NCBI RefSeq assembly: GCF_902459465.1
Contig: NC_047065.1
Span: 1,612,001-1,676,000 of the forward strand
Direction: 5' to 3'
Source: Asterias rubens
Taxonomy: Eukaryota
Length of the DNA: 64,000 nt
Shown: positions 1,403 through 64,000 of the stretch, piece by piece
How positions within the stretch are numbered: the stretch's first letter is position 1
Layout: each line of letters starts with the position of its first letter
The notes under the pieces: generated by a model
Database searches by the model: none
Seen by the model: the letters and a program-made list of their open reading frames with translations, nothing else
Told to the model about the DNA's origin: nothing
Translations under genes and position numbers: made by a program

Positions 1403-2028
1403 AGGGAATAGATGCCAAAGCTTCTTTTTGTGCTTTTAAAAAAGCAGCTCTCAGAAACAGAACCCTGGATGTAAGCCGTTAACAGTTTTTTTCTTTCCCA
1501 GGTCACTATTTCAGGTTTGTAGTCTGCGAGTCTTCTGCTATTAGGCTACTCACCGAGTTCACTATTTGAGGTCCGAGTTCTGTGAGCTCTTTGTTGAAGA
1601 CTTCTCACATTCTTTTAAGATATGAAGTCTGTAGGCCTACTAAGCCATTTGCGAGTTCGATTTGAAATATTGTCTGGTATCATGACTTGCTTAGTCACAA
1701 TGTACCGCTTACATTCGATCTCCTCAGACTATAGAGACAGTTGCTATGTCGAATCGTTCGGGGCAAGCTTTTGTATAGCAACCTCAAAAAGAGCAAACCC
1801 TGGTACCATTGAGCCATACACATCCATTCAGAATTGTGTATGGGTGTCCACTTAAGTAACTAAGCTAAAGATTGCCCTTAATCATCTGACATAGCAACTG
1901 TCTGGATAGTCTGAGGTATTCAAATTTAAGTGGTAACTTGTGATCAAGCACGTCATTGTACCAGACAGTATTCAAATTTAACACGCAAATGGCTTATATA
2001 ACTAACATCATAAGACTCGTTCATATAT

Positions 2029-5000
2029 TCATTTCCCTGCTGATGACGCTGCAATCATATCACTCGAGATCTGTAGTCTGTAATTACTAATATCATAGGA
2101 TTCATGCATGTCTTCGTTGCCCCACTGGCGCTGCATTCTCGCTCGTACAGGGTTCACCACCATCGACACCAAGCAGCTACTGAGGGCGCTGTTCATCGGA
2201 TTCCACGACTGCGCAAAAGTAAAGAATACGGCCGGACTAACGGGTATTTTGTGTCTGTTCTTCGGAAGTTTCCCGGCCTCGTGCTTAAATGTTGGTTTGT
2301 TGACGACGTAGTGCAGGAGGCGCTGCTGGAACAGGCTGCTATCAAACACCATGACCGGTTGGTTTCGTTCCAGCTTCTGAAGAGTAAGATTGGACATTTG
2401 AGAGTCGGCAATCGGGCCTTTCTCTGTACTGCACCAAAAGATTTTACTCCGGCAGTAACGTGTTGCGTAGATGTTACCATAGTCATCACATTGCAGTAGC
2501 AAACTAATAGGAGAGAACAAGAAAGACACTAAAGAAAATGTTGGGTTTTTTTAAGGACATTTTTTAACATCCCAGTATTTCATAAAGCAGGTGCTGCAGC
2601 CTATGGCAGTAACATTCTTGCAACTTTGATGAACAGTTGAGCCAAAATTTGTACAGATTTGTTGTTTAATGCATATCTCGGGATACACCAAGTGAGAATC
2701 CTGGGCCCAATTTCATAGAGCTGCTAAGCACAAAAATTTGCTTAGCATGAAATTTCTGCCTCGATAAAAACAGGATTACCAACCAAATTTCCACATGATT
2801 TTCAGGATTCAGCAAACATCAGCTGATTACCTGTAACAAGCAATGTGCAACAAATGGAAATTTTGTTGGTAATCCTGTTTTTTTCAAGGAAGAAATTTCA
2901 TGCTAAGCAAATTTTTGTGCTTAGCAGCTCTATGAAATTGGGCCCTGGTCTCTGACATTAACTAAGCGTGTCCAGGAGTAGGTTTCACATAGATTGTCCT
3001 AACTTTGGACTAGACCTAGGACTCTTTCGGAGTTATCAATAACTTAACGCTAGTCCAAAGTTAGGACTAGTAACTCATCCTATTTTGAGATAAGACTAGT
3101 CCGAATCTTACCCCTTCTCCAGAGCCTGCAAGACATGGTCTGTAAACTTGTACTGACTATCAGTCATTTCCGTTCGCTGATCGTCTGTAATATTTGGGAA
3201 CTCCACTCCTGCGGGGAAAGCGCCGTCAGTATTGAACTGCCATGGTTTATTGTAGTAGACGAGACAGCCATGTGGGTTCTTGATGTGTTCTCTGACGACC
3301 TCTTGAGATCGGTAACGGATTCGAATCAACAGTTCCCGGTCTGTGAACCAAATGAGGATAAAAGTCATTAAAAGTACCATTTCAGCATTGGTTTTTGCTA
3401 ACAAAACAGTTGCTGGCAGTGTAAGCACTTTATGTAAACTGACAAACCTGTAAAAGTTTGAGATCGATCGTCCATCTGGGTCACAACAAAACAGTAAAAA
3501 AACAAATTAGACATTTTGCATGACATCGATTAACAACTCAACTCACATATGGCCCCCGACATTAATTGGTTGCACAGTGGGAGGGTTAACCATCAAGTAA
3601 AGCATAAGTTTTTCTTACAATCAGGTAGTGCTGGAACTTCCTCTTTATTTGACGCATGACCTTCCTTGTCCTTCTTGAGGTCTGCCCTTGCCGGGGGTGA
3701 ACTTTCCTGAGGTTCATTTTCTTGTTGAGGAACGACCGGGTCAACGGTCATAGGTTGCTCCGATGAAATATCCTGGAGCTGTGATTGATCAATAGTGCCG
3801 ATCATGTTGTTGACTGGTACGACACCAGATATCATGGCTGACGGATTCTGGACGGGAACTGCTTGTGGCATTTCTTCTGATTCAACAAAATTATTAAAAA
3901 ATCAGGTTATTAATTTAAAATGATTTGGGGTTGAACAAAGACAAATTTACTAGAGTGGCTATTTTAAATGTTCAAATGAAAGATTCCCGAGCCATTATTG
4001 CTGAAGTGGGGCCAGGTTTCCAAACTGTTTGTGTTTGAAGGGCCTTTTGACTGTGACATTTGATACTCCTTATCAATAGCTGCATCTCAGATCAATGCAG
4101 AGTAGACGGTAATTTAAATCTGTGCTGGGAAGCACAATGTATTTTGCACAGAGGGCTGGGCAAAAATTATCATTCATAAATACCCCAGACAGTGTCGCTA
4201 CTCATATTAGTTGAGAGCGCGTCACATGGTGGTGATTAAACCGTTGATAATGACAGGCTGGAGCAGTTTATAATCGGCTGTCTTACGCGTGTCTGGCGCA
4301 CGCGTACGACGCCAATAATATCATGCGTTCCGCAATTCATAACTACTAGTAACAGTGCATAATCTATTTCTAAGCGCACGCACGTATTCACAACCCATGC
4401 ACATCAAACAGATTCTTCACAAAGTTTCTGAAAAAAATACTTCAAACCTCAAATTTTCAATTGTCAAAGTGTCTATAATTGTATTTTTATAATGTTTTTT
4501 AACAAAAGGGCATTTATGAATGGGAATAAAAGAGTAGTGGCTCATTCTAAAACGTCCGTTTAAAACCTTGCAGGATCGTTGCCGGTTTTAAATGGCCGTT
4601 AAATAACTCGTCGTTACCCTTTAACTCCCTTAGTCCTGGGCAGTGACGCCCAGCACTGCCAACCAAGGCTTTATTTCTCGGTTTAAAAAATATCAATTTT
4701 TTTAACTGGGCCAATTTTCATTGAGCTGCTTAAAGGCTGATTTTTTGCTTACTGTACGATTTTCATTTTATAGCGCTGCTAACCATAAGCATATAACAAA
4801 GGAATAATAACCTTCCGTTACTGCATGAAAATGAATGACATAACAAAACAAATCCATGGCGAAATGACTGCCTAATTTTCCTGCTAACCTGTGAAATACG
4901 TTTACACCTTAGCAAATATTTCCGCTACAGTAAGTACAAAAATGTGTTTACCGTTAAGCAGCTCTATGAAATTGGGCCCTGCAGCCAGTTTTCAGAACGC

Positions 5001-8000
5001 TAGGAATGATCATATAGGATGGGTTCAATGCGTCCTAACATGAATGGCTAGGAATGATCATATAGGATGGGTTCAATGCATACTAACATGTATGGCTAGG
5101 AATGATCATTAGGATGGGTTCAATGCGTCCTAACATGTATGATTAGGGAATTGAGCTCTTCCTAAGTCCTAAGATTAATCCTAAGTTAGGAAGAGTTTAG
5201 TGAAATCGCCGGCTGGTTGTATCAATCTCACCTTGTAATAAATTGGAAAAATCTTGGTGGTTTTGTGCTTCGTACATGTGTGGTGATTGGGCAGATGGTT
5301 GTAGATACATGGCGTCCATGCTTTGAGCTGGATAAGTCGGCGAACTTTGCATTTCAACTTCTGCTTGTTTCAGCATGTTCTGAAGGACCTCAAGGTGTAC
5401 AGACATTTCTATAAATATAAAAAATATAAAAATAATAGTGAGTTTATTCAATAATAACAATCTTTAAAGGCATGGGGACCTTTGGTAATTGTTGAAGACC
5501 AGTCTTCTCACTTGGTGTATCTCAACATATGCACACACACAAAAACTGTGAAAATTTGAACTCAATTGGTTGTCGAAGTTGCGAGATAATAATGGAAGAA
5601 AAAAACACCCTTGTCACACGAAGTTGTGTGCTTTCAGATGCTTGATTTCGGGACCTCAAAGTCTAATTCTGAGGTCTTGAAATCAAATCCATGAAAAATT
5701 ACTTCTTTCTCGAAAACTATGTTACTTCAGAATGGTTTATACCATCAAAACCTCTCCATTGCTTGTTTCCAAGTAAATTTTTATGCTAACAATTATTTTG
5801 AGTAATTACCAATAGTGTCCAGTCCCTTTGAAGACACTGGACACCTTTGGTAATTGTCAAAGACCAGTCTTTTCATTTCATCAAAACATTGTACTCAATA
5901 ATGTTGCAATTACTGTAATATATGCTCATAGTTTTTGAAAAATAGTTTTATAAATGTGAACAAACATCATTTGAACAAGTACAAAGTTTGGGGGAAACAG
6001 TTTAAAGACGCTGGACACTATTGGTAATTGTCAAAGACCAGTCTTTTCACTTGCTGTATCTCAACATATGCATAAAATAACAAACCTAAGTTGCGAGATA
6101 ACAATGAAAGAAAAAATACCCTTGTCACACGAGGTTGTGTGCTTTCAGATGCTTGATTTCAAGACCTCAAATTCAAATTCATTGAAATTTACTTCTTTCT
6201 AGAAAACTAATTTACCTGCAGAGGGAGCCGTTTCTCACAATATTTTATACAATCAACCTCTCCCCACTACTTGTTACCAAGTAAAGTTTTATACTAATAA
6301 TTATTTTGAGTAATTACCAATAGTGTCCACTGCCTTTAAGTCAGAGAATAGACTCTAAAGCGTAGATTTGTGACTACAATGTACTCTTTCTACCAACGAG
6401 TCTACACTTTCTCATCCATTCTCCTTAACTTAAAAGATACCCTTACTGTATTACCCACCTATTTGACTTGCCATTTGCTGTTGACTTAGATCTGGTGGAC
6501 TCTGAATAGGAATCAAACCATGAGAATTGGTTAACGATTAAATACAGGATTGACAACTTATCAAAAAAGGAATTAGCTTCAATATAACAGCTTGCTGATT
6601 ATGGAGTCCATCCTCCAGAGAAATATTTCCATCTGAAAGTTCACTGATTCTAAATTTCATACCAGTACCAATCCTCCAGAGAAATATTTCCATCTGAAAG
6701 TTCACTGACCAGAACCAATCCTCCAGAGAAATATTTCCATCTGAAAGCTCACTGATTCTAAATTTCGTACCAGAACCAATCCTCCAGAGAAATATTTTCA
6801 TCTGAAAGCTGACTGATTATAAATGTCATACCAGTGCCAATCCTCAAAAGAAATATTTATATCTGAAAGCTCACTGATTCTAAGTAACAATCCTCCAGAG
6901 AAATATTTTCATCTGAAAGCTCACTGATTCTAAAGTTCATATCAAAACCCCTTCGCTTTTCGATTAAGTGCACTGGGTGCTTGTACATTACACTAAACAC
7001 AGGACCAACGGCTTTACGTCCCATCCGAAGGACAAAGTATCATGGTTTTGCGTAGATCTTGCTGTAAGGACACAGGTGTCACGACTCTCGCACCAACACT
7101 CTGCTGAACAGAAACACCAGAGCTTGAGTTCGGTGCTCTTAACCTATAGGCCATTAATACCAGATGTTGTATTCAAAACGATATTACCTACTTACCATGG
7201 CTAAGACCATGTCGCAACAATCGTCATCGTTTTGAACACTGGGAGTTTCAATGATACCTGCTTCCGCCACAGCTGCAATATCTTTAAAGAAATCATCAAA
7301 TCCAAATAATTTAAAGATGTTAAATTTGCATCGGAGATAAAGAATATTTATTTGGTTTTTAACTATAATATACACCGATCGGTGTTATAGCACTGTACAC
7401 TCAGTACTAACCCGAGCTCTGTGAAAAAAATCACAGGTATATTACTCGGGTGGGATTCGAACATAGGATTGGAGCTGCATCTAGCCACGGGGCAATCTCA
7501 GTGGTCTAGTTGGTGTGACACTGCTCTAGAATTGCAAAGGTCGTGGGTTGGAATCCCACCCGAGTAATAAACCTGTGATTTTTTTCACAGAGCTCGGTGT
7601 ACAGTGCTAACACACATCTGTGTATATAGGTAAAAACTAAACGAAAATCCAAATAATGTTAAAAATGTGTGATCAACTTGAGCAAGTGACAGTGCTGTAG
7701 TTGAATCCCTGTTGTTTGAGTCCTACAATCAGAGCCAAAATGGTTGGGCCACCCATTCGCAAACTGGCAATTGACATTCCCTGTCCCGCCCCCCGGTCAA
7801 TGTTGATGGCAGCGCTGACCGCGAAATTAAGAGTCAACATAGAAAGGGGGCAGGGGGATATGGCCGAGATTGTAGTCACTCATGAGTATGTTAAGTTTGT
7901 CTTGTCAGTAAGTCATTGCGTCACACACGTTCTTATCTGCTGCAAACCCAAAGTGGTTTGTTTCTTTCGGCTCTATAGCTGGCATACATTTGTGCATGCT

Positions 8001-8465
8001 GTGTGTAGTTTTAGAAAACTTCACTAATTTCATGGCTCAAAGCATTTCTTACGAAAGAAATATTTAACTAAGAGAAACATTTAAAAAAGAATTGATACAT
8101 TTTTTTAAATTATGAAACTGATTCATGATGCACCTAATTAGGAAACTCCTTCTCTTACTACATAGGCCCCCCCCCCCAAAGAAAAAAACATGTCTAGTGT
8201 CCTGACTTTTTGAAAAAAGGAAGAATAGAGGGTCTTTTTCTTCTTAAAAACTTGCCGCCTGACACATTTTTAAAAGACAAAAAGGAGGTGGCCTCTAAAA
8301 AGGAAGCGGGCAGGACACTAAACATATTTTATTTTTTGTTAGGCCGAAGTTACCATTCTGAAAGCCATATGGCATGTTATCTTCACCAAGCATTGCTAGG
8401 AACTGCCCCAGTGCCGCATTCTGCTGTGCTTCATCAACATTTATCACCTCTTGATTAGTCTCCAT
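2029..8465 (-). CDS. IRF-like protein A: C-terminal IRF association domain (IAD, SMAD/FHA fold), no DNA-binding domain found; 7 coding exons, 459 aa
   Basis: Exons (minus): 8354-8465 (METNQEV...GFQN), 7196-7281, 6459-6501, 5232-5408, 3619-3876, 3112-3340, 2029-2503. All are GT-AG, phases join, total 1380 nt. The C-terminus has IRF IAD hallmarks: RELLIRIRYRSQEVVREHIKNPHGCLVYY, VEFP...QYKFTDHVLQALEKGLLL, GNIYATRYCRSKIFW (cf. IRF5 IYAIRLCQCKVFW, IRF4 LYAKRLCQSRIYW), KLERNQPVMVFD (cf. IRF4 KLERDQTCKLFD), VFFTFAQSW, LVSMVVNPVRAR, and RLQIS. The N-terminal exons were assigned from splice signals and from phase matching with paralog B, so they are less certain than the IAD exons. Confidence 0.85.
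2704..2944. mobile_element. PIF/Harbinger-like palindromic MITE (representative of the most abundant family in the window)
   Basis: About 100-bp TIRs starting GGCCCAATTTCATAGAGCTGCTAAGC, with 3-bp CTG duplication at 2701-2703 and 2945-2947. Related copies at about 4710-4980, 13402-13578 (CAG TSD), 21465-21720, 22655-22910, 23357-23598, 35500-35745, 37545-37742, 39222-39365, 42820-43075, 45018-45318 and 55605-55805. Confidence 0.8.
4999..5142. repeat. 48-bp tandem repeat, 3 copies
   Basis: GCTAGGAATGATCATATAGGATGGGTTCAATGCGTCCTAACATG.ATG repeated three times. Confidence 0.85.
6611..6940. repeat. About 61-bp minisatellite, 6 copies, in an IRF-like gene A intron
   Basis: Unit TCCTCCAGAGAAATATTTCCATCTGAAAGCTCACTGATTCTAAATTTCATACCAG.ACCAA starts at 6611, 6672, 6719, 6780, 6841 and 6891 (two truncated units). 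Confidence 0.9.
7355..7640. mobile_element. Inverted-repeat element enclosing a tRNA-like (Pol III A/B box) head
   Basis: Long inverted arms at about 7355-7462 and 7547-7640 (CCGAGCTCTGTGAAAAAAATCACAGG..TTACTCGGGTGGGATTC). The interior has A-box TGGTCTAGTTGG and B-box GGTTGGAATCC. Confidence 0.6.
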
Positions 8466-9105
8466 CTTGTATTCAAAAACGACGATCCGTACACCAGGAT
8501 AAAGGCAACCAAAAGATTATCTAAAACAAGGAAGATAAACGTTCATTTCAGTTTTTTAAAATGTTATCATGACACAAAATCATGACACAAATTCTAGGAA
8601 CACGAACTTAATCCTCATTCAATGTCTAATGAATCCTTTTTAACACTCAAAACACAAAAAGGACAAAAACTTACCAGATCCGGAGTCAAACAGTGACAAT
8701 CAGCATTTGTAGTGGAGTAGTTGGGGACTGAATTACGGTAAGAATTTATATTTTTTAAACAATTTTTGAGATTGCGGAGTGGATTTTCTGTCGCCCCCAG
8801 GGTCAATTAATGAGAGTTCAAAGGACACAAAGAGCCTAATTTTGGCGAGATTAAAAAAGAAAGAAAAGAGATTTGCGCAAACAATATTAAAAGAACCAGA
8901 AAAAAAGCAGAATCGTTATTGTCGTAAGAGATGTCAACCTATGAGGTTATGGGAGACGAGAGCGGAACGAAACCTCATAGTTTTAGGAGTAGTACGAAGT
9001 GTTGGACCAGTTTGTCGTTTGCCACTCGAGAGAATCCCGTAACCCTCCGGCCTTGCGACTGTCGGGAGAAGGGTTACATTATCGCAACTAACCCTGAACC
9101 AACAA

Positions 9106-9234
9106 ATTAGTTTATCATATTATTTATTGTTATGTATGTTGTTGTTAAAACTTATTTTGACATTATCACTGATATAATGTCAAAATAAGTTTTAACAACA
9201 ACATACATAACAATAAATAATATGATAAACTAAT
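9106..9234. repeat. Perfect 61-bp inverted repeat with 7-nt loop
   Basis: 9106-9166 is the exact reverse complement of 9174-9234; loop CACTGAT. Confidence 0.95.
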
Positions 9235-10271
9235 CATTCATTCATTCAATTTTGAAATGATTTGGATAGACAACGGAGTTATAGATTTAAGATTATATTT
9301 ATAAACTTACAATTAACTAAAAACCTACTTCTCCAAAGTCCTCGTGAAAAGAGTTTCTGATAAAACAAATATGGTGATGACTTCAGTGTGTTTATCTGTG
9401 CCGCTACCTTTCATTTAGTTACTATTTTTGGGATTTTGGAATTCCCAGATTGCATCATTGAACAAAATAATGTTCAACATGTAACATGTAGTTCGATGTA
9501 ACAATTATGCTTATTTTTGTCAATAAAAACCAGATAAAACAACACTTATTTTTCTTAAATATTCTTTGGGATACTATTATCTTTCAATATCTAAAAAACT
9601 AATTAAATTTGTATAATGTGATTGTCAATAAATATAAGCATGAACTACATCAAGCCAACACTGTGATAACAACGCCGTTGTTGCTTTTATTTTTAGCAGA
9701 TGACGACACCGATCATACGGGGAATACCCAAAACCTTAAAGGGCGCCCTCAATGCTGTCAAATCAATGCAACAAAGCAGTGTCGTCTGCATTACAAGGGT
9801 CAAAACATTTTGTTTAACAGTCAATGATATATTTTTTCATTACGTGTTGTAGTATTATTGTGAAGCCAAATTGAACTCAATAAAGAACGAATTGAATACC
9901 AAGTGAATATGTCTCATGAGCGTTTTATTCTCCGGTTCTCGACCATCCTGCTATCCCATAATATGTCTCCCAACTTCTAGAGGTCACTCTAATTTGCATA
10001 GGTCTCATTTGCATAGCACAGTAAACAATGCATGTAATGCATACATGTACATGTAATATCAGGACACTACACGTGTTATATAATGAAGATGATATCGCTG
10101 ATAATGAAGGTTTTTTATTGTCAACTGAATGATCAACGGTAATTATTGTGATGAATAATCCATACCATTCTGATTCTCAAACTAATCCTGAGATGGTTTA
10201 AGGAGTGATTTCAGGCCCAGTGACCAGGGGTAATAATGTGAAGTGCTTTGGGACGCCCTTCGGGTGTAAAA

Positions 10272-10528
10272 NNNNNNNNNNNNNNNNNNNNNNNNNNNNN
10301 NNNNNNNNNNNNNNNNNNNNNNNNNNNNNNNNNNNNNNNNNNNNNNNNNNNNNNNNNNNNNNNNNNNNNNNNNNNNNNNNNNNNNNNNNNNNNNNNNNNN
10401 NNNNNNNNNNNNNNNNNNNNNNNNNNNNNNNNNNNNNNNNNNNNNNNNNNNNNNNNNNNNNNNNNNNNNNNNNNNNNNNNNNNNNNNNNNNNNNNNNNNN
10501 NNNNNNNNNNNNNNNNNNNNNNNNNNNA
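10272..10528. other. Assembly gap (N run) between the two IRF-like genes
   Basis: Run of N; the true size is unknown. Confidence 0.99.
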
Positions 10529-11709
10529 TTGTGAGAATAATAATAGATAAAACCAATGATAAAAATGTTCAACACAAAATAACAAATCCTCAAAAAATTC
10601 CCTCTCAAAGATGAAATTCCAGGCTTGGAAATTTATTGATATTCCTAAACCGTTGACAAGTTTCCTTATAAATTAGAAAAACTACCTCTGTTATAAATGG
10701 GAAAATAAATAAGAACAACTTGTGCTAACTTCAGATACATAAAGTGGTTAAAAAATAATGATTTCTCTGATAAACCATTTCAGTATTGGTAATTGTCAAG
10801 GACCAGTGTTCTCACTTGTGTATCCCATCATAAGCATAAAATAACAAGCCTGTGAAAATTTGGGCTCAATTGGTCATCCAAGTTGCGAGAAAATGATGAA
10901 AGAAAAAACAACCTTGTTGGACGAATTTTGTGTTTACAGACAATAATAACAGTCTTCTAGCTAGAAGTCTTTTAATATTTTAGTGAGAAACTATCTCTTT
11001 CGCAAAAACTACGTTACTTCAGAGGGAGTTGTTTCCCACAATTTCTTATACTATCAACAGCTCTCCAATGCTCGTTACCAAGTCAGTTTTTAAGTTAATG
11101 GTTGTTTCGAGTAATTACCAAATGTGTACCTTCCCTGTAAAGGAGGGCCGTTTTATGTGTACAATTTTGCATTTTAGCAATTTTGTTATTTACAACATGA
11201 ATTGGAAAATGTTTACTTTTATTTTGCACACAGACATATTACATATTTTGCCGATACACAATACAAGCAGAAGTAAGAAAGAACAATATTTACAATCTCA
11301 TACATGAGAAGCATTCATACACATTGGCATAACCGGATTTGTTTAAAATATTTTTTGTTGTGGGGGGGGGGGGCTATTTAATGTATTGAAACAAATGACT
11401 AATTGTGTTTGTCCATTAAATGCACCATTTTAGATTCCACGCAAACCTGAAAGCATTAATAACAGTTTTAAAATATATGGCCTTTCATGCAAGAGAAATC
11501 TTTTCTGATACTTTTTCTCTACAAGAATTTGTACAAATGATGCTGTTTTAAAAGGGAATATGTACAAAAAGGTTCTTACAATGCACAAAACATTTTGCTC
11601 TGCTCTGCTATGAGGGAAATCGTTCAGCGATTCTATTCTTGTGATGATCACTATTAGAAGCACTTTGAGCGCTTTATAATTTTGTTGTTATTATTTATTA
11701 TTATTCTAA

Positions 11710-14696
11710 TCACAACTGACTTGGAAGACTCTTCGAAAGCTGAATTCTGTAATCACTAACGGGATATGAAATATGCTGGTCGTCATTTCCCCAGCGATGT
11801 TGCATCCTTGGGCGAACAGGATTCACGATCATCGACGTCAAGCAGTAGCTGAGGGCACCCTCATTAGGGTTCCACGGCTGGGCAAATGTGAAATAAATAG
11901 CAGGGCTGATCGGTGAGATGTGGTTGTTGGGTAGGAGTCCTGCTGGTTCATTTCTAAACGTGGGTTTGTTGACAATGAAGTGCTTTAGCCTTTGCTCGAA
12001 CATCTCGTTATCAAAGACCATGACTTCGCTGTTCCTCTCTAGTTTGTACGGAACAAAGTCATCCATTCTCCCTTCAGCGATCGGTCCTTTCTCTGTACTC
12101 CACCAGAAAACTTTACTTTGACAATGTCGAGTCGCATAAACATTTCCCATATCATCACATCGAAGATACAGGCTGAAAATGACAAGAAAGAAAAAGCAAA
12201 CCCTTCATATTTCATTTGTCCTTTTTCTTGTGAAGCCAAGGACTCTCAGAAAAGTGAACTTAATCACTGTACTAGCCAAGAACCCAATGGAGAGAAGACA
12301 ATGAAGGGAATATCAGTTTTATATGTGGGAGGAGAACCCCAGGAACTATCCTAAGGAAAACCCATGCACTCAGGTAGGGACTGAAAACCCAATCTACATG
12401 GTGCCCCCGGTGAGTTTCGACGCGGGTCCTGGAGGTGAAAGGCGACCCTTGTACAAAATCAGATCTACCTACCCATTTTCTAGAGCTTTCAGAATTTGCA
12501 TGGTGCACTTGAACTGAACATCTGTCATTCTTTTCTTCACATTGACTGCAATGCCTGGGAACTCCACTCTTGTAGGCACAGCCTCTCCCGAGTCAAACTG
12601 CGAAGGTTTATTATGGTAGACGAGGCAGCCATTTGGGTTATTGACATATTCTCTGACCACCTCTTGAGAACGATAGCGTAGCCGAATCAACAGCTCCTTT
12701 CTTGAAAGTTGTTCAAGTGTCAGTGCCGGTGTCTTTTCTCTTGATGCATTCCTTGTTTCTGGAGAATTCAGAGCCACCTCAGCGATATTGCCTGTTGAAG
12801 AAGTTGGTAGCAGCAGCGAGTCTTTCCTAAGGGATCCCTGATTGGTAAAACTCGGCTCAGGAACAATCCCTGAAATCATTGCAAACGGATTCCCAACTGG
12901 AACTGTTGGAGCAATATCTTGAGAAAAAAATTGATAACAAGAACAGTTTCACAATCTTGAACAATGAAAATGTGCGCAAGTGTACACACAACTCATTTGT
13001 TTTAACGAGTGAAAGGTCTTCCTTTGACTTCATTGAGGGCGCTATTTAGGCTTTTGATGACATATGCTAGGGGTCTGTTTAAAATAGTTAGACAAACAAC
13101 ACTGTAATGTTTGTTTTAAAAACCTTACCATAGCTATCAGAAGGTGATAGTCGAGCATTGTCCATCCATAGACTTGTACCAGTCTCCATCGGCGATTCAT
13201 TCTGATTGATCTGTCCAAAGACATCATTGATGAAGTCTAGATCTAGTGTGGAAAAACAGAGACTATTTCAAGTTTATCTTAAATCTTGTACCATTGAGAA
13301 ACAAGAGTGTTGAATTGTTGACATGTTGACATTATGGTATCACACTGGAAACAACAATATTTCTTTATTGTCAAATTCACAGTATTTTGGACTAAGTCCA
13401 GGGGCCAATTTCATAGAGCTGCTTAAGCAAAACAAAACATGCTAAGCACAACAAAATTATGCTCACCAGGATAAGGTTACCAGCCAAACTACCATGTCAC
13501 ATGTACCATTTGTGATTGGTATCCACTCATCTCTGCTTAGCGGAGATGTGTTTTTAAGCAGTTCAATGAAATTGGGCCCAGGGCTCATCCACAATGGTAT
13601 GAGACATGGGTCTAGGACTCGGACTCGTTCCCAACTAACTCAAAGTTTTACTAAAAGACATCAGACTCGACTTTTATGACTCCGACTTCATACTTATTTA
13701 ATTTATCCCCCCCCCCAAAAAAAAATTCTCAGAATATCATGCTAAACCCATAACTTCAATGCTTATTCTTAATTTGAGAGGAACCAAAATATTTCAATGC
13801 AAGTTGATACCGAGAAGTATATTCACCAACCTAGCATTGGTAGCGTCTGTTCTTGTCCATTCTCGTTAGGAATCTGTCCGGAGAAAATACAAACAAATGA
13901 ATGGCCTGATGACCAAGGCTGGGGCTTCCTTGAAGACAATGACAATTAATTAAATTATACCTGTTCATGTTGGTTGTATTTCTTTAGCCTTCAAGAAAGA
14001 CTCTGCTACTGCTAGGGTTGAAACCTCATTTAATTACATCAACAAAAAATTGTAGCTTTCAAATTTTTTTGAACTTACCGTGGGCAAAAGCATCTGGTCA
14101 AAATCATCATCAGGGACACCATAGGAGGATGAAAGTCCCACTGGTTCTTCAAAAGGCAATTTGAAGAAAAAAAGAAATTTAAACTTGGGTGCAAGTAAAG
14201 GGCAAGGCAAAGGCAAGGGCAAGTGCAAGTAAAGGGCAAGGCAAGTGCAAGGGCAACGACTGATTATAATAAAACAGCAATGTAGCTGCTCAACATTGCA
14301 CCACATTTTTAAGTTAAAGTTAAAAGCTCCATCAAGCTAACTGCATTTTACTCATTTAAAAAATACAGCACCTCAGCAATTCGTATTTTTGATGGAAGCT
14401 TTCTACCATCATTATCTTCAAATCGTGTAAGTTTAAAGTGTAAATGTGTGGATATTGGATTTTGTGTCCTACAAAAAATAAACAGAGTTCTGTGAAGAAA
14501 ACAAATTACACAAGCAAATGACTCGGGTGGGATTCGAACCAAAATGTCTTGGCTTACCTGTTATGCTCCTCATAATAGGAGGCAACCCAAGGTCATCCAG
14601 CATCTCATGTTGCTTGTCGAGCAAACCTTGAAGAGAGTTCGTTGCTAGACTAGTTGGAAACATGTTCACTGGGGAAATGTTCACCCTTGCAGGCAT
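11710..14696 (-). CDS. IRF-like protein B: tandem paralog of A, IAD only; 6 coding exons, 423 aa
   Basis: Exons (minus): 14558-14696 (MPARVNISP...MRSIT), 14079-14146, 13831-13873, 13129-13242, 12473-12917, 11710-12172. All are GT-AG, phases join, total 1272 nt. IAD motifs: KELLIRLRYRSQEVVREYVNNPNGCLVYH, VEFP, QILKALENGLYL, GNVYATRHCQSKVFW, KLERNSEVMVFD, IYFTFAQPW, CLTSMIVNPVRPR, RIQLS. The exon phase pattern matches gene A, including an identical-length 43-nt micro-exon. Confidence 0.85.
12305..12460 (-). mobile_element. SINE-like dispersed repeat (copies at about 26105-26235 and, opposite strand, about 43085-43240)
   Basis: Shared block GGAAACCCATGCA.TCAGGTAGGGACTGAA.ACCC.AATC.ACATG in all three loci. 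Confidence 0.55.
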
Positions 14697-42188: not shown

Positions 42189-44528
42189 TTAACATTGCTT
42201 GTAGACAACACCAGAATGTCTGCCGGCAACATTCTGACGATAATGACGCTTGCCTGAGCGACTCTGCTGGTGGTATGCCTTGTTATGACGCTCGACCTTT
42301 GACCTACTTAGTGATCCCTTCTTTGTACGTTCCATAACCTCTGCCTCTTGGATGGCAGCCAAGTTCGGCGGGTTTTCCAAACCAACGCGAGCTGCCACTG
42401 CAGCTGCGCGGCGGGGTGGCTGCGTGTTGCGCACACGCAGATTACGTGACTTGGATTTCTTCACGATCTGATCAGTGTTTTGTTCGTGCTGACGCATTCT
42501 TCTTGATCTCATCGCCATGCCACTGCGTGGTCCATAAACAGACATACTAGGGTGTTCAATAAGGAGGTTCTCCATGGGACTGGTGGCAAGTTGATGCGGG
42601 GAGCTACCCCCGGCGGTGAAGCATGGAGGAGGGGTAACAAGCCAACTCTCCTCCATGTGATGTTGGCGGTTAGGAATCCCAAGAGGTTGGGTACCAGACT
42701 GGGCATCATTCAATGGTGACTCCCTGCTCCACTTGGGGCTATCTAATCATACAAAAATATCAAGAGCAAAATACTACTAAAGTGTTGACAAAATTTTATC
42801 AATGTTTATTTGGGGATCTGGGCCCAATTTCATGGCTGTGCTAACCGTCAAATTCGGCGCTTACGATCACCATTCTCTGCTTGCACATCAAGCGCTGAAT
42901 TTCTGCTCCAGATGTGTAAGCGTAGGAAGCTTAGTAACATACATGGGGTATGCACGCGCAAATGGGCAAATCCCCCACTAACACGTGATATATGCTTGAC
43001 GTGAGCACAATATTCCCTGCTTCCGCAAGCCCCGATAATTTGCTTATAATAAGCAGAGCCATGAAACTGGGCACAGGTTGGCTCTGTGGTTTCTACACCA
43101 TGCCTTTCACCTCTGTGGACCCCAGTTTTAATCCTGCCTCTTATCTTAGCCTTGATTGTGTTTCAGTCCCTACCTGATTGTGTGGGTTTCCCCTATTTAG
43201 CTTTCCTCCCACATCTGAAACTGAACATTTCTTTATTATCATTTGCATAACTCATCCTGCACATAATATTGTATTGTTCTTCAATAAGACCATTCTTTGA
43301 TTTCACCTTAAACCATCTTCATACTGCCTTTTGATCAAAATACAAATGTAGATCTTCCACTGTACAAATATCATATAAAAAGTCACACCATTTGTCCTTG
43401 CTTAATTAGGGTCATCATAATCAGCTGATCATAAATAATTCATTGAGCCTGTTAATTTAGTCAATCCGATTATGTCTCCTTTTTAATATGTAACATTAGC
43501 GGTTACAAACGAAGGTGAAATAGCACTGTGCAATAACCGACCCGCTGCATTATCCACCACCATTACTCATGCATCAAATGATTCAATTGGTAATAATCAC
43601 ATGCACGGGTAGTGAGACTAGGACTAAGTGGAGACCCATGCGGTGAACGTATAGGTGGTTAAATTAAAAACGGACTACAGTCAGCGCTCTATGGGCATCA
43701 TGGGTAGTCAATGACCTTCTTAGCATTTCTAATCAATATGGAGGGAGAGTAGATTCAATATCCATTCATAAAGAGTTTTTAGCTTAAGTTGCAGGCTGTT
43801 ATTTGGGGGGAAAATTAAAATGTTGAAATGCTACATATATATTGACTTGAATATTTGTCATTACCCGTTGTAAGAGACAATCTTTTCCATATTTATTCAT
43901 AATGAGTTTTTATGTAACCCTTCAAGTTAGCTCTAGTTGCAGGCTGTGCACTGATAGAAAAGATTGTCTTAGACAATGGGTACTGAAAAATATTAAAGGT
44001 AATTTGTAGCATTTAGACATTTTCAGTTTGCTTTCAAATTTCTAATGTCTAACTCTTTGCATATTGATTATTAATATAACTTGAATGAATTAATTTGAAC
44101 AGTGGGTGATGTATACTGTGGATAATCTAACACAAAATAAAATAAACTATCGTTTAGCGTCCTGACTTTTGATAAAAGGAGGCAGGCTCCAAAAATACTA
44201 AGCGGGCAGGGACGCTAAACATGTTTTGGGTTTTTTTTTCGCCTAAGGGTTTGGCAGGCAGGGGAAAGGCCTGGAATTTGATAGGGGCACCAAGGCCATG
44301 GCAAAAGGGTGCCTGATCCTGGCATAACTCAAGGTCTGTAACATTAAAGAGCAAACAGTTAGATAACCTACTGGTGACATCCACAAGTACCCAGTCGTCA
44401 TCAGCATAGGTGAGCTGCATACTAGAGCTCGGTCTAGAGCCCTGCCCGCCATCCTCCGATGCTGATGGGTCTTCAGCACTGGCAGCACTGCCGAAGATGT
44501 ACTCTGCCAGTCCGCTGAGCATACTCAT
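42189..44528 (-). CDS. TP53INP: TP53INP1/2 (DOR family) autophagy and nuclear cofactor, 2 coding exons, 236 aa
   Basis: Exons (minus): 44372-44528 and 42189-42742, joined in phase 1. N-terminal LAEYIFG, LIR-type motif DDDWVLV, DOR-domain signature MEESWLVTPPPCFTAGG...TSPMENLLIEHPSMSVY, and a basic C-terminus ending VVYKQC. A probable 5' UTR exon has its donor at 49299-49303. Confidence 0.92.
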
Positions 44529-51619: not shown

Positions 51620-53975
51620 ATGCCTGTATCACCAGAGGAGCTTGTCAGACTCCTGGCACTTTTGGCCCAGGAGGAGAACCTAAAAGTGACTGTAAAGGAG
51701 ACTATGAAAGGCGGAGCCATGGCTGGTGCTGGAGCTGTGATTGGTGGATTCTGTGGGGGCCCAGTTGGAATTGCAGTTGGTGAGTAAAAACTACTTGTAA
51801 AGCCTAGTTCATACTTTCTGCAAATGCAATTTTGCAATACGATTTTTGACGACACAAATTCGCAACGAATAATTTGCATCAGTTGACTTAAAGCTTGCTC
51901 AACATTACATTGTTTGTGTCTTAAGTGTTGCTGTTGTTTTGTTTTCTCATATGATTTTGTATTTGTGTTGCTTTGCCATGCTTGCCCATGCTTGTTTTTG
52001 TTGTATTATTTTATGAGAATTTGACACTTTTGTTGTAATTTTGTTAAGCATGATTGTTGTTGCACACAATGAGGCAGTATCAGGAAGATCGCTCCTACAT
52101 GTAAATATACCTATGTTGTCTAATTATGTATCATGTAGACCTGGAACTCACTGGAACTCACTGCTTCTGGCATTGTGTGGCCTAATCAGCCCAGTCTTAA
52201 AAATCAAACTTAATGAATTGCTTATTAACATGCCCCTGCTCCAAATTGTTAAACTCTAGCTTAAGCTCGCTTAAATACCACTGTAGCTTCTTGTTCAGTT
52301 TAGTAGGGGAAATAAATAATATTGAAATCAGAACAGGAAATTGCCTCTGTGGCTGCCATCTTCAAATGACTTTTCTTTTGGCTGTCTCTATCGTTGAAAC
52401 TCCTTAGTGTTAAAGATCAGTTCTTGAATGCATTGCTGGCATGTAGTTGCCATGGCAATGGTATTGGTATATGGTTTCCATGGCAACAGCTGCAACAACC
52501 CGTTCTGCATTTTATCCTGGATGGTGCTGGAGTCATCAGGCTAAGAGAACCATTTACACTTCAAATCAACTCTTGGGAATGCACTTTTGTTTCACTGTGT
52601 CTTGCTATTGATCTTCATGTCGTGGTGTCTGTGACAATGGAGTCTGTAAACTTGTATTAACCTTTTTGAGATATGGTGGACATTATAGGAGTGCACTGTT
52701 TGGTTTACCAAAACCTAATATTTATCAAAGTATTGTGTCCACAATACTTTTGGGGGGTTGCATAAGCAATCTCTTGTACATGTTCATGCAATTATGGTCT
52801 TCAATGGTCTATTGACCAAAAACAAGGAGAAACACCCAAGGGCCAGTCAAATTCTCTTCAAGTGGTCAAGTTGGCGTTTAAAAAGTAGCTCCAGGCATGA
52901 TATTATTCCTACTCTAGTCTGAACCAAACTGTGATTAATAAGCCTGAAATGTGTCACACACGTAGGTCGCCCTTTCACTAGACGAGTTGCTCCTACTTTT
53001 TTCGAAAGACCAAGTGCCATGCCTGTAATAAACCTAATGGGCCTGGACTAATGTGGACACCTGTGGTTACTGGTCTAACTCCAACAGGCCAGTCTACTAA
53101 AAAAGGGCAACCTTTCACTTCATATATATGAATTGATGACCTTCATTTACTGTATTTCAAATGGCTTATTATTTTGTTGTCTGTGTGCACCGCATATCAC
53201 TGTAGGCTTCATTGGTTCTTTTGAGAGACAATGACTGCATGGTTAGTGTATTCCTATTTTGTTTAATTTTTTTAACTTTTTTTATTTATTTTTTTATTTT
53301 TTATTTAAGCTGTCCATTGGCCATACTGTAGCAATTTGATTTAAATTTTGTAACTTTTTGCATTGTTAGTTTGGATTGTTACCTACTGTAACTTGTTATA
53401 TCAGAATAAAATGTTTGATACATAATTGGGAAACTACCAGTGAACGGAAACCTGACTATCTTTAGACGACCTCTAACAGGCATGCAACTCTCCCGCGTTT
53501 CATGTAAAATAAGCCTAGTACATGCAAAAAATGCACCTAAGAGCATAATAAACCTTAACATTTTCTAGGGTACCATTGTGGGTATCATGTCCCGTGGTGT
53601 TTCGGCTGCCTCGCTCCGCACCTGCGTTGTGCCTTTGAAAATTTTCCTCTTTTTTTTCAACGGGCAGTTGCATGCCTGCTCTAAAGATTTTAACGTAAAG
53701 TTTGATCTTTCTCAGGTGGTACTCTGGGCAGTATAGCTGGTGCCATCATGACTAGTGGGAAATTTAAATCCGTGCCAGAAATACTTTGTGAAATGGATCC
53801 CGTGACTAGAAATCAACTCTTCGAGCACTTCCAAAATGTCATCACAGGGTTTGGAACCCATGATGTTGTGACGCTTACTCGCTTGGTGATGGGGGACCCG
53901 ATTGCTCGGATACAGGCTTTGAATGGATTGAAAAACTTCTTTTTGACCACTTTGAAGATGGATGTGACGAGTTGA
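51620..53975 (+). CDS. C19orf12: C19orf12 homolog (MPAN/Nazo family glycine-zipper membrane protein), isoform using proximal terminal exon 2a, 139 aa
   Basis: Exon 51620-51779 (MPVSPEELVRLLALLAQEENLKVTVKETMKGGAMAGAGAVIGGFCGGPVGIAV) joins in phase 1 to 53716-53975 (GGTLGSIAGAIMTSGKFKSVPEILCEM...LKMDVTS). It aligns colinearly with human C19orf12 ([39 protein letters not shown]). A probable non-coding exon ends at the donor near 50395. Confidence 0.93.
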
Positions 53976-55345: not shown

Positions 55346-56392
55346 TTAGTCTCAGGAGTACTCCAGTCGCATACAAACAAGATGAAATATTAAAGAGACA
55401 CCTGGTGAAATTTACTCTGTTTGGTAAACCTAAATTCACTGTCCTTAGCTACCTTCGGTGCTTTTTAACAGCACTGTGAAATTGGCCCAGTTCACAGAAA
55501 CAATCTATATGACCATAGCCAGAGCCAATAACACTTGATAAGGACAAAGCCTTATATATGTATTGTGATTAAATTGTATTAGGATTTCTTCTGTGCCCAA
55601 TTTCATAAAGCCTGTAAGCACAAACAAATGTTCTAAGCACAGACAAATCTTGCTTAGCAGAAATTGGGTAATAGCCAAAGCCAAAATTTCATGGAGTTCA
55701 CATTGTTGGAAGTGGTGCCCCACTCAATGTTTGCTTTGCAAAGATTTTTGCAAAAACCAATTCTTTGTGCAAAAAAACCCAAACAGCTCTATGAAATTGG
55801 GCCCAGTTGACCAAGTGGAGGATTTAGAATGATTTAGGTTGACGTTGACAGGTCGGATATTTACTGTGCTTATCACAGGGTCAGGCACTTCAATCTTTAG
55901 AGTCTAAACAACTTGGTCTGGAGTAGCATAGGAGAATAGGATGATGGAATGTGCACATCAGTGAGATGTCCTTGTCTTTTTGGCCTTGTCTATGATGTCT
56001 TTGTTATGTCCAATTGTTCCACTGTGTCATGTTTGTCAGACAAGTGTCATCTTTAAACCATCTTACCAGCTTAACAAACATGTTTTAAAAACTCACATTG
56101 CCACTTCAACTCATTGGTTTTAATACTAATGTGTTTGTTACTGTGTTATCAGGCAGAATTTGTAATTTTGGAACTTGACAAATTGCCAAAACATAATAAG
56201 TACTAATTAAAGCTCTTGAAAGTTATTTGCATTCCTTTATTTTTCACTTAATTCTAGCAAGTAGTTATTGTATATATTGATATATAAAACTGTGCAAGTC
56301 GTTTCAAATAATAAAAATAATAATTGTTTGGAAGAGAATTTCACTGTCATTTTGGATTTTTTTGTTTGTTTTCGAATCTTACCTTGTCACAG

Positions 56393-56679
56393 GAGGTACG
56401 TTAGGTGGGATGATGGCGCGATGGAAGTACAAAGGAAACAATCGACCCCTCACAGACGTCCTCCCCGAAATGACGAAAGAACAACGAGATCAACTGCATG
56501 AACAGTGTCAACCGGTACTCCGCGATTACATCGACGATGACTTCATCTCGATGAGTCGGTTGATGAATAACGACGGGGAATTCCGAGAGAGATTGGTGCA
56601 GAGTCTTAAGACATTCGTCACCGAGACGATGAAACTTCAATTATGTGTGGAACTGCTCACAAGAGGCAAAGCAGAATGA
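56393..56679 (+). CDS. C19orf12: Second, diverged C19orf12 terminal exon (2b); gives a 148-aa isoform if spliced to exon 51620-51779
   Basis: Acceptor ccttgtcacAG at 56391-56392, phase 1 as for exon 2a, open to TGA at 56679. The translation GGTLGGMMARWKYKGNNRPLTDVLPEMTKEQRDQLHEQCQPVL...LKTFVTETMKLQL aligns without gaps to exon 2a (about 25 of 86 positions identical, counted by hand). I found no dedicated first exon between 53975 and 56390. Confidence 0.8.
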
Positions 56680-63360: not shown

Positions 63361-63515
63361 GTGAGCTCATTTTTTTTAAAAGCCATGTACTTGTTTCTAT
63401 AGACAAGGCTTTTTGTTTAAGCAGGATTCATGATAATGTTTTGAACCAGGCCTGATACATCACAGAAGCAACGAAGGTGATTGCCTCTGTGCCTCGTGGT
63501 CATTGCCTTGGTGCC

Positions 63516-63885
63516 NNNNNNNNNNNNNNNNNNNNNNNNNNNNNNNNNNNNNNNNNNNNNNNNNNNNNNNNNNNNNNNNNNNNNNNNNNNNNNNNNNNNN
63601 NNNNNNNNNNNNNNNNNNNNNNNNNNNNNNNNNNNNNNNNNNNNNNNNNNNNNNNNNNNNNNNNNNNNNNNNNNNNNNNNNNNNNNNNNNNNNNNNNNNN
63701 NNNNNNNNNNNNNNNNNNNNNNNNNNNNNNNNNNNNNNNNNNNNNNNNNNNNNNNNNNNNNNNNNNNNNNNNNNNNNNNNNNNNNNNNNNNNNNNNNNNN
63801 NNNNNNNNNNNNNNNNNNNNNNNNNNNNNNNNNNNNNNNNNNNNNNNNNNNNNNNNNNNNNNNNNNNNNNNNNNNNNNNNNNNNN
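63516..63885. other. Assembly gap (N run) inside NAGPA
   Basis: Run of N; it may hide NAGPA exon(s). Confidence 0.99.
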
Positions 63886-64000
63886 TTGTTTGCTGTGTTT
63901 CCATAATATAACAAACATCATGGGCAGCTTAATATAGTGTGGACCTGGTTCGAATCAACCCTCAGACCTGAGCCCTGCATAGGAATTGAGCTTTCAGTCC

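Follow-up and report, generated by a model that had tools for sequence, protein, structure and literature searches.

Two neighbouring interferon regulatory factor paralogs of the sea star Asterias rubens without a DNA-binding domain and with a conserved serine-bearing tail

Gene organization

The 64,000-nucleotide stretch of the Asterias rubens genome analysed here, referred to below as the window (NCBI RefSeq assembly GCF_902459465.1, contig NC_047065.1, positions 1,612,001 to 1,676,000 of the forward strand), carries on its minus strand two neighbouring genes, A and B, which encode relatives of the interferon regulatory factors (IRFs) with an IRF association domain and without an IRF DNA-binding domain (DBD). 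The observation of two DBD-less IRF paralogs that both bear a serine motif in the C-terminal tail and a basic patch on the association domain, as put forward in a preliminary description of this sequence, is confirmed; the interpretation given there as a whole is partly supported.

Gene A occupies 2029..8465 and corresponds to LOC117289027 isoform X1 (protein P0033, 459 residues), with coding exons at 8354-8465, 7196-7281, 6459-6501, 5232-5408, 3619-3876, 3112-3340 and 2029-2503 and a stop codon at 2029-2031; its association domain (P0033 residues 228-425) is encoded by two exons, which together with the C-terminal tail span 2029..3340. Gene B occupies 11710..14696, with coding exons at 14558-14696, 14079-14146, 13831-13873, 13129-13242, 12473-12917 and 11710-12172 and a stop codon at 11710-11712, and its product (protein P0023, 423 residues) is the same as that of RefSeq XP_033626879, which bears the annotation 'interferon regulatory factor 6-like [Asterias rubens]'. 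The RefSeq labels 'IRF6-like' and 'IRF5-like' are names of similarity only. When the exons of the window were chained by script through GT-AG introns, P0033 and P0023 were reproduced exactly without touching the assembly gap at 10272..10527, which lies between the first coding exon of gene A (8354-8465) and the stop codon of gene B (11710). As the gap falls outside both coding sequences, it is intergenic and leaves the finding unaffected. The last exons of the two genes are 58% identical.

The minus-strand open reading frame (ORF) at 2029..2529 ends in HESYDISNYRLQISSDMIAASSAGK (also given as WGNEDMHESYDISNYRLQISSDMIAASSAGK) before its stop codon, and that at 11710..12150 ends in HISYPVSDYRIQLSKSLPSQL (also given as WGNDDQHISYPVSDYRIQLSKSLPSQL). 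Counting codons back from each stop codon places RLQIS of gene A at 2065..2079 (P0033 residues 444-448), with 11 residues after the serine, and RIQLS of gene B at 11734..11748 (P0023 residues 412-416), with seven residues after it. These positions had been given correctly from the outset; the protein ends quoted with them, ...SSD and ...SKS, had the right sequence but were slightly short, as nine and five more residues follow. The basic strands reported for the two association domains are both present in the window, IYATRYCRSKIFW of gene A at 2443..2481 and VYATRHCQSKVFW of gene B at 12103..12141, on the minus strand.

Domain content and origin of the genes

The association domain (IAD1) was recognized by the Pfam model PF10401 (gathering score cut-off 27 bits) with 81 bits in gene A (expectation value E 1.2e-22) and 73.9 bits in gene B (E 1.7e-20), and the only other Pfam match in either protein was a weak one to the related MH2 domain. 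The IRF DBD with its tryptophan pentad (PF00605) had no match in P0033, in P0023 or in seven relatives, and none within the 64-kb window, so the claim that both genes are without this domain holds, and in its DBD-based definition the IRF transcription factor family does not include them; a canonical IRF run as a control (protein P0007 of Acanthaster) matched both PF00605 (E 6e-36) and PF10401. When the complete assembly (417.6 Mb, 150 contigs) was searched in six frames, only two PF00605 loci were found, at C21:7.40 Mb and at C4:1.214-1.215 Mb, both outside the window, in agreement with the two IRFs counted in the sea urchin (PMC2885996). The C21 contig gave no association-domain match alongside its PF00605 locus, which is therefore taken as an IRF1/2-type gene. 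The C4 DBD, which is split over two exons, belongs to the canonical A. rubens IRF (LOC117288984, protein P0052; G000:C4:1206099-1215459, loci L001, L006, L010 and L011), whose association domain lies at C4:1.206 Mb. As it lies on the same strand as A and B and 400 kb downstream of them, this gene cannot supply their 5' exons. Association-domain loci number five in the genome: A and B, the canonical gene, and two more at C4:1.194 Mb and C15:4.85 Mb. A. rubens thus has, next to a single canonical IRF, at least four genes with the association domain only.

In their N-terminal halves, A and B can be aligned with the canonical IRF linker, with which they share the motifs DLDxIxDV and VPVxNPxAMISG, and their own linker keeps a motif of the form LDLDFINDVF. 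An intron within the association domain occupies the same place in all three genes (ALEKG/LLLQ in A, ALENG/LYLR in B and CFERG/MSIE in the canonical gene, with the slash marking the intron). The linker alignment and the common intron position together indicate that A and B are IRF paralogs without DBD exons. By these sequence features, they are tandem, intact paralogs of the sole association-domain-bearing IRF of echinoderms and derive from it through loss of the DBD exons. The canonical gene is further alike in lying on the same chromosome and in having GLLQIS in the column of the tail motif, and it differs in having a DBD, in having about 31 residues after the serine and, in A. rubens, at two positions of the basic patch described below.

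The remaining two association-domain loci (G000:C4:1193877-1194191, L003; G000:C15:4850681-4850995, L002) are near-identical further paralogs at which no DBD match was found. Their basic strand reads NIHIERYCRSRVLCY, their tail reads ...SSLSLNHTEDK, with no serine at the motif position, and they look orthologous to Acanthaster LOC110980133 (protein P0031, 744 residues, tail ...STLCLSS).

Expression and the C-terminus

Logan contigs of four runs (X1, X2, X11 and X12), which come from four studies, were placed on positions 1600-7500 of the window. In all four runs, single contigs split into the RefSeq exon blocks of gene A (1957-2503, 3112-3340, 3619-3876, 5232-5408 and 7196-7282), and the last block was continuous and unspliced past the stop codon by about 72 nt. 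These spliced contigs establish that the four runs are RNA and that the C-terminus of gene A is as read; gene A is expressed. Upstream of exon 2 the contig held only 271 nt, comprising exon 1 and the 5' untranslated region. One run was polymorphic in the exons of gene A, with no polymorphism within 2065-2079. Words from gene B were present in the same RNA runs at 0.59-0.72 of those sampled, compared with an exon share of 0.75, and expression of gene B is thereby indicated.

The preliminary description had named a C-terminus swapped by alternative splicing as a finding that would speak against its reading, and none was found for gene A, the last exon being contiguous through the stop codon in the four runs. 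An alternative C-terminus was considered for this gene from protein P0004, the tail of which differs after RLQIS, and was rejected on the same unspliced A. rubens contigs. The tail of P0030 is colinear with that of the window, and RLQIS is present in every gene A tail variant.

The introns of gene A contain interspersed repeats (2585-2978, 3373-3569 and 5343-6524) over which, in each of the four runs, the contig depth was thousands-fold above that of the exons and joints between repeats were numerous. A unit containing GCAGCTCTATGAAATTGGGCC recurs near 105-125, 2925-2945, 4965-4980 and 13400-13420 of the window.

Fold and basic patch of the association domain

An AlphaFold2 model of P0033 residues 225-459, built from a 15-sequence alignment, had a predicted template-modelling score of 0.77 and a mean predicted local distance difference test score (pLDDT) of 78.8, with a core of about 90; the last 25 residues, including the motif, were below 50 and are predicted to be disordered. 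Foldseek matched the model at a probability of 1.00 to IRF5 (3DSH; E 4e-15, the best match), IRF4 (5BVI), IRF3 (5JEM, 5JEJ and 7JFL) and IRF9 (5OEM); SMAD MH2 domains came next. According to this model, the complete association-domain fold, an MH2-like beta-sandwich, is kept.

In IRF3, phosphoserine is docked by the basic surface residues R211, R285, H288, H290 and K313, of which R285 serves the docking of the adaptor phosphoserine and R211 serves dimer formation with phosphorylated S386 (PMC7672473). The corresponding positions in A and B were mapped by aligning the echinoderm profile with IRF3 5JEJ and IRF5 3DSH in HMMER together with the 15-sequence alignment (A2), using as anchors in 5JEJ chain residue 100, which is R285 in AQRLGHCHTYW, and K313 within VPKDKEGGVFDL; the canonical A. 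rubens residues were read from P0052. At R211, arginine is found in A (RYRSQ), B and IRF5 and glutamine in the canonical protein. R285 is arginine in all four, as it is in 15 of the 15 aligned sequences, and K313 is matched by arginine in the same four proteins (KLERN in A). H288 is matched by arginine in A and in the canonical protein and by glutamine in B and IRF5, and H290 by lysine in A, B and IRF5 and by valine in the canonical protein. On the basic strand, the residues aligned with R285, H288 and H290 are thus R, R and K in gene A and R, Q and K in gene B, and the R, Q, K, R pattern of IRF5 is identical to that of gene B. With glutamine at R211 and valine at H290 in the canonical IRF, A and B are more like IRF3 and IRF5 at the patch than the canonical protein is. 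The basic pocket ascribed earlier to both proteins is therefore borne out at the sequence level in A, in which all five positions are basic, and in B with the glutamine at H288 that IRF5 also has, but the same basic residues are present in IRF4 (YAKRLCQSRIYW, KLERD, YYR). The IRF5 strand had been quoted as IYAIRLCQCKVFW; PDB entry 3DSH reads DLYAIRLCQCKVFW, so the quotation was one letter off.

The serine motif of the C-terminal tail

Focusing on the C-terminal end of the association domain, phmmer aligned hesydisnyrlqiss of the last exon of gene A with SWSADDIRLQISN of IRF5 3DSH, column for column across the motif, and the 15-sequence echinoderm profile gave the same alignment with E 1.7e-28, YRLQISS of A standing opposite IRLQISN of 3DSH in HMMER. 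The vertebrate IRF5 (and IRF6) domain, with its serine cluster SWSADSIRLQIS, is the closest known system in both the profile and the Foldseek comparison, and its likeness to A and B extends to a serine-aromatic pair 11 and 10 residues before the motif serine (SW in IRF5, SY in A and B). In human IRF5, the segment ELSWSADSIRLQISNPD is the C-terminal dimerisation and activation segment (PMC6563445; also a preprint). By alignment, the tail motif of A and B is positionally homologous to the IRF5 activation site IRLQIS, and the equation of RLQIS with the motif of IRF5, made in the preliminary description, has this column-for-column match behind it. The two proteins differ from IRF5 in having no DBD, in having an acidic N-terminus and in having no counterpart of helix 5, which is swapped between subunits in the IRF5 dimer.

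GLLQIS stands in the motif column of the canonical sea-star IRF and MLQIS in that of a DBD-less brittle-star relative, so that LQIS is ancestral to this domain lineage; the five-letter identity with IRF5 reads as shared ancestry plus one coincident arginine. Under a strict definition of pLxIS (hydrophilic-L-x-I-S), RLQIS of gene A fits and RIQLS of gene B does not strictly do so. Strict pLxIS motifs were found within the last 25 residues in 0.4-0.5% of shuffles of each protein, and the match therefore exceeds what chance would give.

Among orthologs of gene A, the motif is RLQIS in P0030 and P0004 (a close Asterias-like species), RLQMS in P0002, RPQIS in Patiria miniata (P0034 and P0050) and RAQIS in Acanthaster planci (P0003); among B-type sequences it is RIQIS in A. 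amurensis (P0022) and RIQLS in two further A. rubens sequences. Asked whether the motif is conserved in orthologs, these sequences give a divided answer: the exact pLxIS varies (RPQIS, RAQIS, RLQMS), whereas Y-R-x-Q-hydrophobic-S is kept in six of the six asteroid sequences compared. Across these six, positions -5 (Y), -4 (R), -2 (Q), -1 (hydrophobic) and 0 (S) show identity or conservative replacement, and position -3 reads L, L, P, A, I and I. As the leucine is thus replaceable, what is constrained is Y-R-x-Q-hydrophobic-S rather than strict pLxIS. The surrounding conserved block can be written W-G-N-(E/D)-D-x-H-x-S-(Y/F)-x-x-S-(N/D)-Y-R-x-Q-(I/L/M)-S. Over the 20 residues ending at the serine, the mean identity in the same six sequences is 74%, close upon 81% in the preceding folded segment, and after the serine, where six to 20 residues remain, it is 11%. 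Such a sharp drop in identity at the serine, within a tail predicted to be disordered, is the strongest computational sign of selection on a linear motif, and the serine-bearing tail has the pattern that would be expected of a functional one. The motif serine is present in 13 of the 15 aligned echinoderm and hemichordate sequences.

The preliminary description had also suggested that LQI in A and IQL in B might reflect different partner specificities. The B ortholog of A. amurensis has RIQIS and the A orthologs vary at these positions, so that the contrast differs even between sister species; a specificity difference is therefore unlikely, and a code of this kind was rejected.

The wider family

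When all representative proteins were searched, only 21 matches resulted. Among these, proteins with the association domain and without a DBD were found in Amphiura filiformis (three, with neighbouring accessions), Holothuria leucospilota, Diadema, Acanthaster and Patiria, and they span four echinoderm classes; most of the DBD-less relatives have hydrophobic-x-hydrophobic-Ser at the aligned tail position. In a maximum-likelihood tree rooted on a hemichordate IRF outgroup, A and B grouped with the echinoderm DBD-less proteins and not with vertebrate IRF5 and IRF6, and the DBD-less proteins stood apart from the canonical Acanthaster IRF with support of 94/92, which is below the reliability threshold, in a tree with several long branches. 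The simplest reading of these sequences would be a single old loss of the DBD in echinoderms. The tree does not order the split between A and B relative to the divergence of the sampled sea-star orders (Asterias on the one hand, Patiria and Acanthaster on the other). The Diadema setosum protein P0017 (XP_072175532, 772 residues) contains two tandem DBD-less association-domain units, which may be a real duplication or neighbouring genes fused in annotation.

In our literature search no paper was found on echinoderm or invertebrate DBD-less association-domain proteins or on their tail motif, although the coverage was incomplete and absence is not proven. Surveys of invertebrate IRFs have searched by the DBD (PMC2885996), and genes with only an association domain would be missed by a survey keyed in this way. 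The association domain and the logic of the serine tail are known; a conserved stand-alone family that uses them without a DBD is, to our knowledge, new.

Discussion

The reading that we favour, tentatively and at somewhat short of an even chance, is that A and B are signal-controlled, DNA-binding-free modulators of IRF-dependent transcription that act through docking of a phosphorylated tail. The tail serine, possibly together with conserved serines upstream of it, would be phosphorylated by a kinase of the TBK1/IKK family, and the tail, once phosphorylated, would dock in a second association domain at its basic patch, that domain belonging either to a protein of its own kind or to the canonical IRF. 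As A and B would have no DNA binding of their own, they would act by modulating IRF-dependent transcription depending on the signal. The effect could have either sign, that of an inhibitory decoy or that of a co-activator working through the very acidic N-terminus, and judged from the sequences the phospho-switch, decoy and adaptor readings are all plausible. Two loci with TBK1 ubiquitin-like and TBK1 coiled-coil domains (G000:C2:19198846-19207026 and C2:23036408-23045368; L013-L016) are candidate orthologs of TBK1/IKK-epsilon.

The proposed arrangement resembles the pLxIS switch of IRF3 and IRF7 in the basic or conservatively replaced residues of the patch, in the flexible serine-bearing tail at the domain's C-terminal end and in the presence of TBK1-like kinase genes. 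It differs in that neither A nor B has basic residues at the equivalents of IRF3 K360 and R361 and in that RIQLS, RPQIS and RAQIS fall outside the strict motif. A second comparison is with proteins of the same fold that have an MH2 domain alone or a defective MH1 domain, are signalling modulators and have no functional DBD, namely the inhibitory SMAD6 and SMAD7 and Drosophila Expansion (N-MH2, 4R9P). Inhibitory SMADs and Expansion are not known to have a phospho-acceptor motif at the C-terminus, in contrast to A and B with their tail motif, and the sequence similarity is only remote. The 4R9P domain, which comes from a protein described as having no MH1 domain, scored against the echinoderm profile with E 1.4e-08, better than IRF3 (2.6e-07), a hint that stand-alone domains with this fold may be connected at a deeper level.

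Several observations weigh against signal-controlled docking of the tail. In addition to the non-basic K360/R361 equivalents, the helix that follows the serine in IRF5 (helix 5) is absent, the proteins ending 11 and seven residues on, and the leucine of pLxIS is replaced by proline or alanine in orthologs of A. The holothurian relative has HLQLN, with asparagine in place of the serine. IRF4, as far as we know, does not dock pLxIS motifs, and as it has the same basic residues, the patch alone is no proof of phosphoserine binding and may be a structural feature of the whole family. Phosphorylation of the tail and its binding are themselves predictions. A predicted complex of P0033 residues 222-459 with residues 415-649 of the canonical P0052 scored 0.25 against a mark of 0.34, which is evidence neither way. 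We know of no pLxIS adaptor in echinoderms, and the STING ligand-binding domain (PF15009) gave no match in the six-frame genome search, in which the controls gave none either.

Extended from A and B to the whole family, the same idea would make an old family of stand-alone association-domain proteins in sea stars, brittle stars, sea cucumbers and sea urchins true signal-gated modules that tune the sole canonical IRF by kinase action and tail docking, which we regard as rather doubtful.

Weighed against tail docking, the explanation that survives best, itself somewhat unlikely, is that the tail motif and the patch have been inherited as features of the family but have ceased to form a switch, A and B being constitutive, phosphorylation-independent scaffolds or cofactors that work through other surfaces of the domain, for example with a STAT-, ETS- or CBP-like partner, as do the domains of IRF9, IRF4 and IRF8. 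The variable leucine position, the serine-free HLQLN, the basic residues of IRF4, the missing helix 5 and the tail that is unstructured in the model would all fit such a history, as would the close structural matches to the domains of IRF4 and IRF9. It would, however, be hard to explain without a function why the tail is conserved like the folded core exactly as far as the serine and not past it, and why the serine is kept in 13 of the 15 sequences.

An effect of the opposite sign is also conceivable, in which A and B are signal-dependent co-activators whose acidic, hydrophobic N-terminal halves transactivate and which reach DNA by pairing with the canonical IRF, association domain to association domain; this we consider unlikely. 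The N-terminal part contains 36 D+E versus 6 K+R in A (over 225 residues), 25 versus 9 in B and 38 versus 5 in Patiria A, a composition compatible with either a co-activator or a decoy, and the N-terminal segments are conserved among A, B and the canonical linker. The segments DDDFDQMLL and LDLDFINDVF resemble acidic activation motifs, but they could equally be nuclear-export signals or a plain disordered linker. Heterodimerisation was neither backed nor refuted in silico by the complex prediction given above, and activation is predicted only.

That A and B are artefacts, either truncated models or pseudogenes, or genes with a DBD exon hidden in the gap or upstream, is highly improbable: the gap is of unknown true length, but it could concern gene A only, since it comes downstream of gene B and precedes the ATG of gene A by about 1.8 kb; at about 256 bp it would hide at most one of the two exons over which a canonical DBD extends, and the second would show in the window, where none is visible; the region of the N-terminal methionine is kept between Asterias and Patiria (MET/MENGQ...FLAML); DBD-less orthologs occur in Acanthaster, Patiria, Amphiura, Holothuria and Diadema; the other DBD locus on the chromosome is that of the canonical gene, 400 kb away; and the exact splice models, the 271-nt limit of the transcript contigs and the genome census of DBDs led us to reject a hidden exon.

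Should docking of the phosphorylated tail prove to be how this echinoderm family acts, the IRF side of the phosphoserine switch would predate vertebrates and their pLxIS adaptors and would here be used without DNA binding. If the tail serine is a real phospho-acceptor, the logic of phosphoserine and basic patch would be older than the adaptor motifs of vertebrate STING, MAVS and TRIF. A and B would separate association-domain signalling from DNA binding and so constitute a natural experiment, and they would be candidates for the regulation of antiviral and inflammatory responses in echinoderms, for instance in studies of sea-star wasting disease. Both genes already have RefSeq entries with similarity-based names, and the functional claims made for them here are predictions.

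Other features of the window

Besides genes A and B, the window contains a further assembly gap, made up of consecutive N, at about 63500-63900. A DOR/TP53INP-like exon (PF14839, E 7e-34) is located at 42189-42713 on the minus strand and probably belongs with 44154-44528 on the same strand, the upstream ORF containing the acidic DDDWVLVD. A 178-residue ORF at 61802-62338 on the plus strand weakly matches the phosphodiester glycosidase NAGPA (PF09992), with an E of 0.004 that is below the cut-off. Two C19orf12-like exons (PF20721, E 1.5e-07 and 0.006) are found at 53748-53975 and 56362-56679, both on the plus strand.

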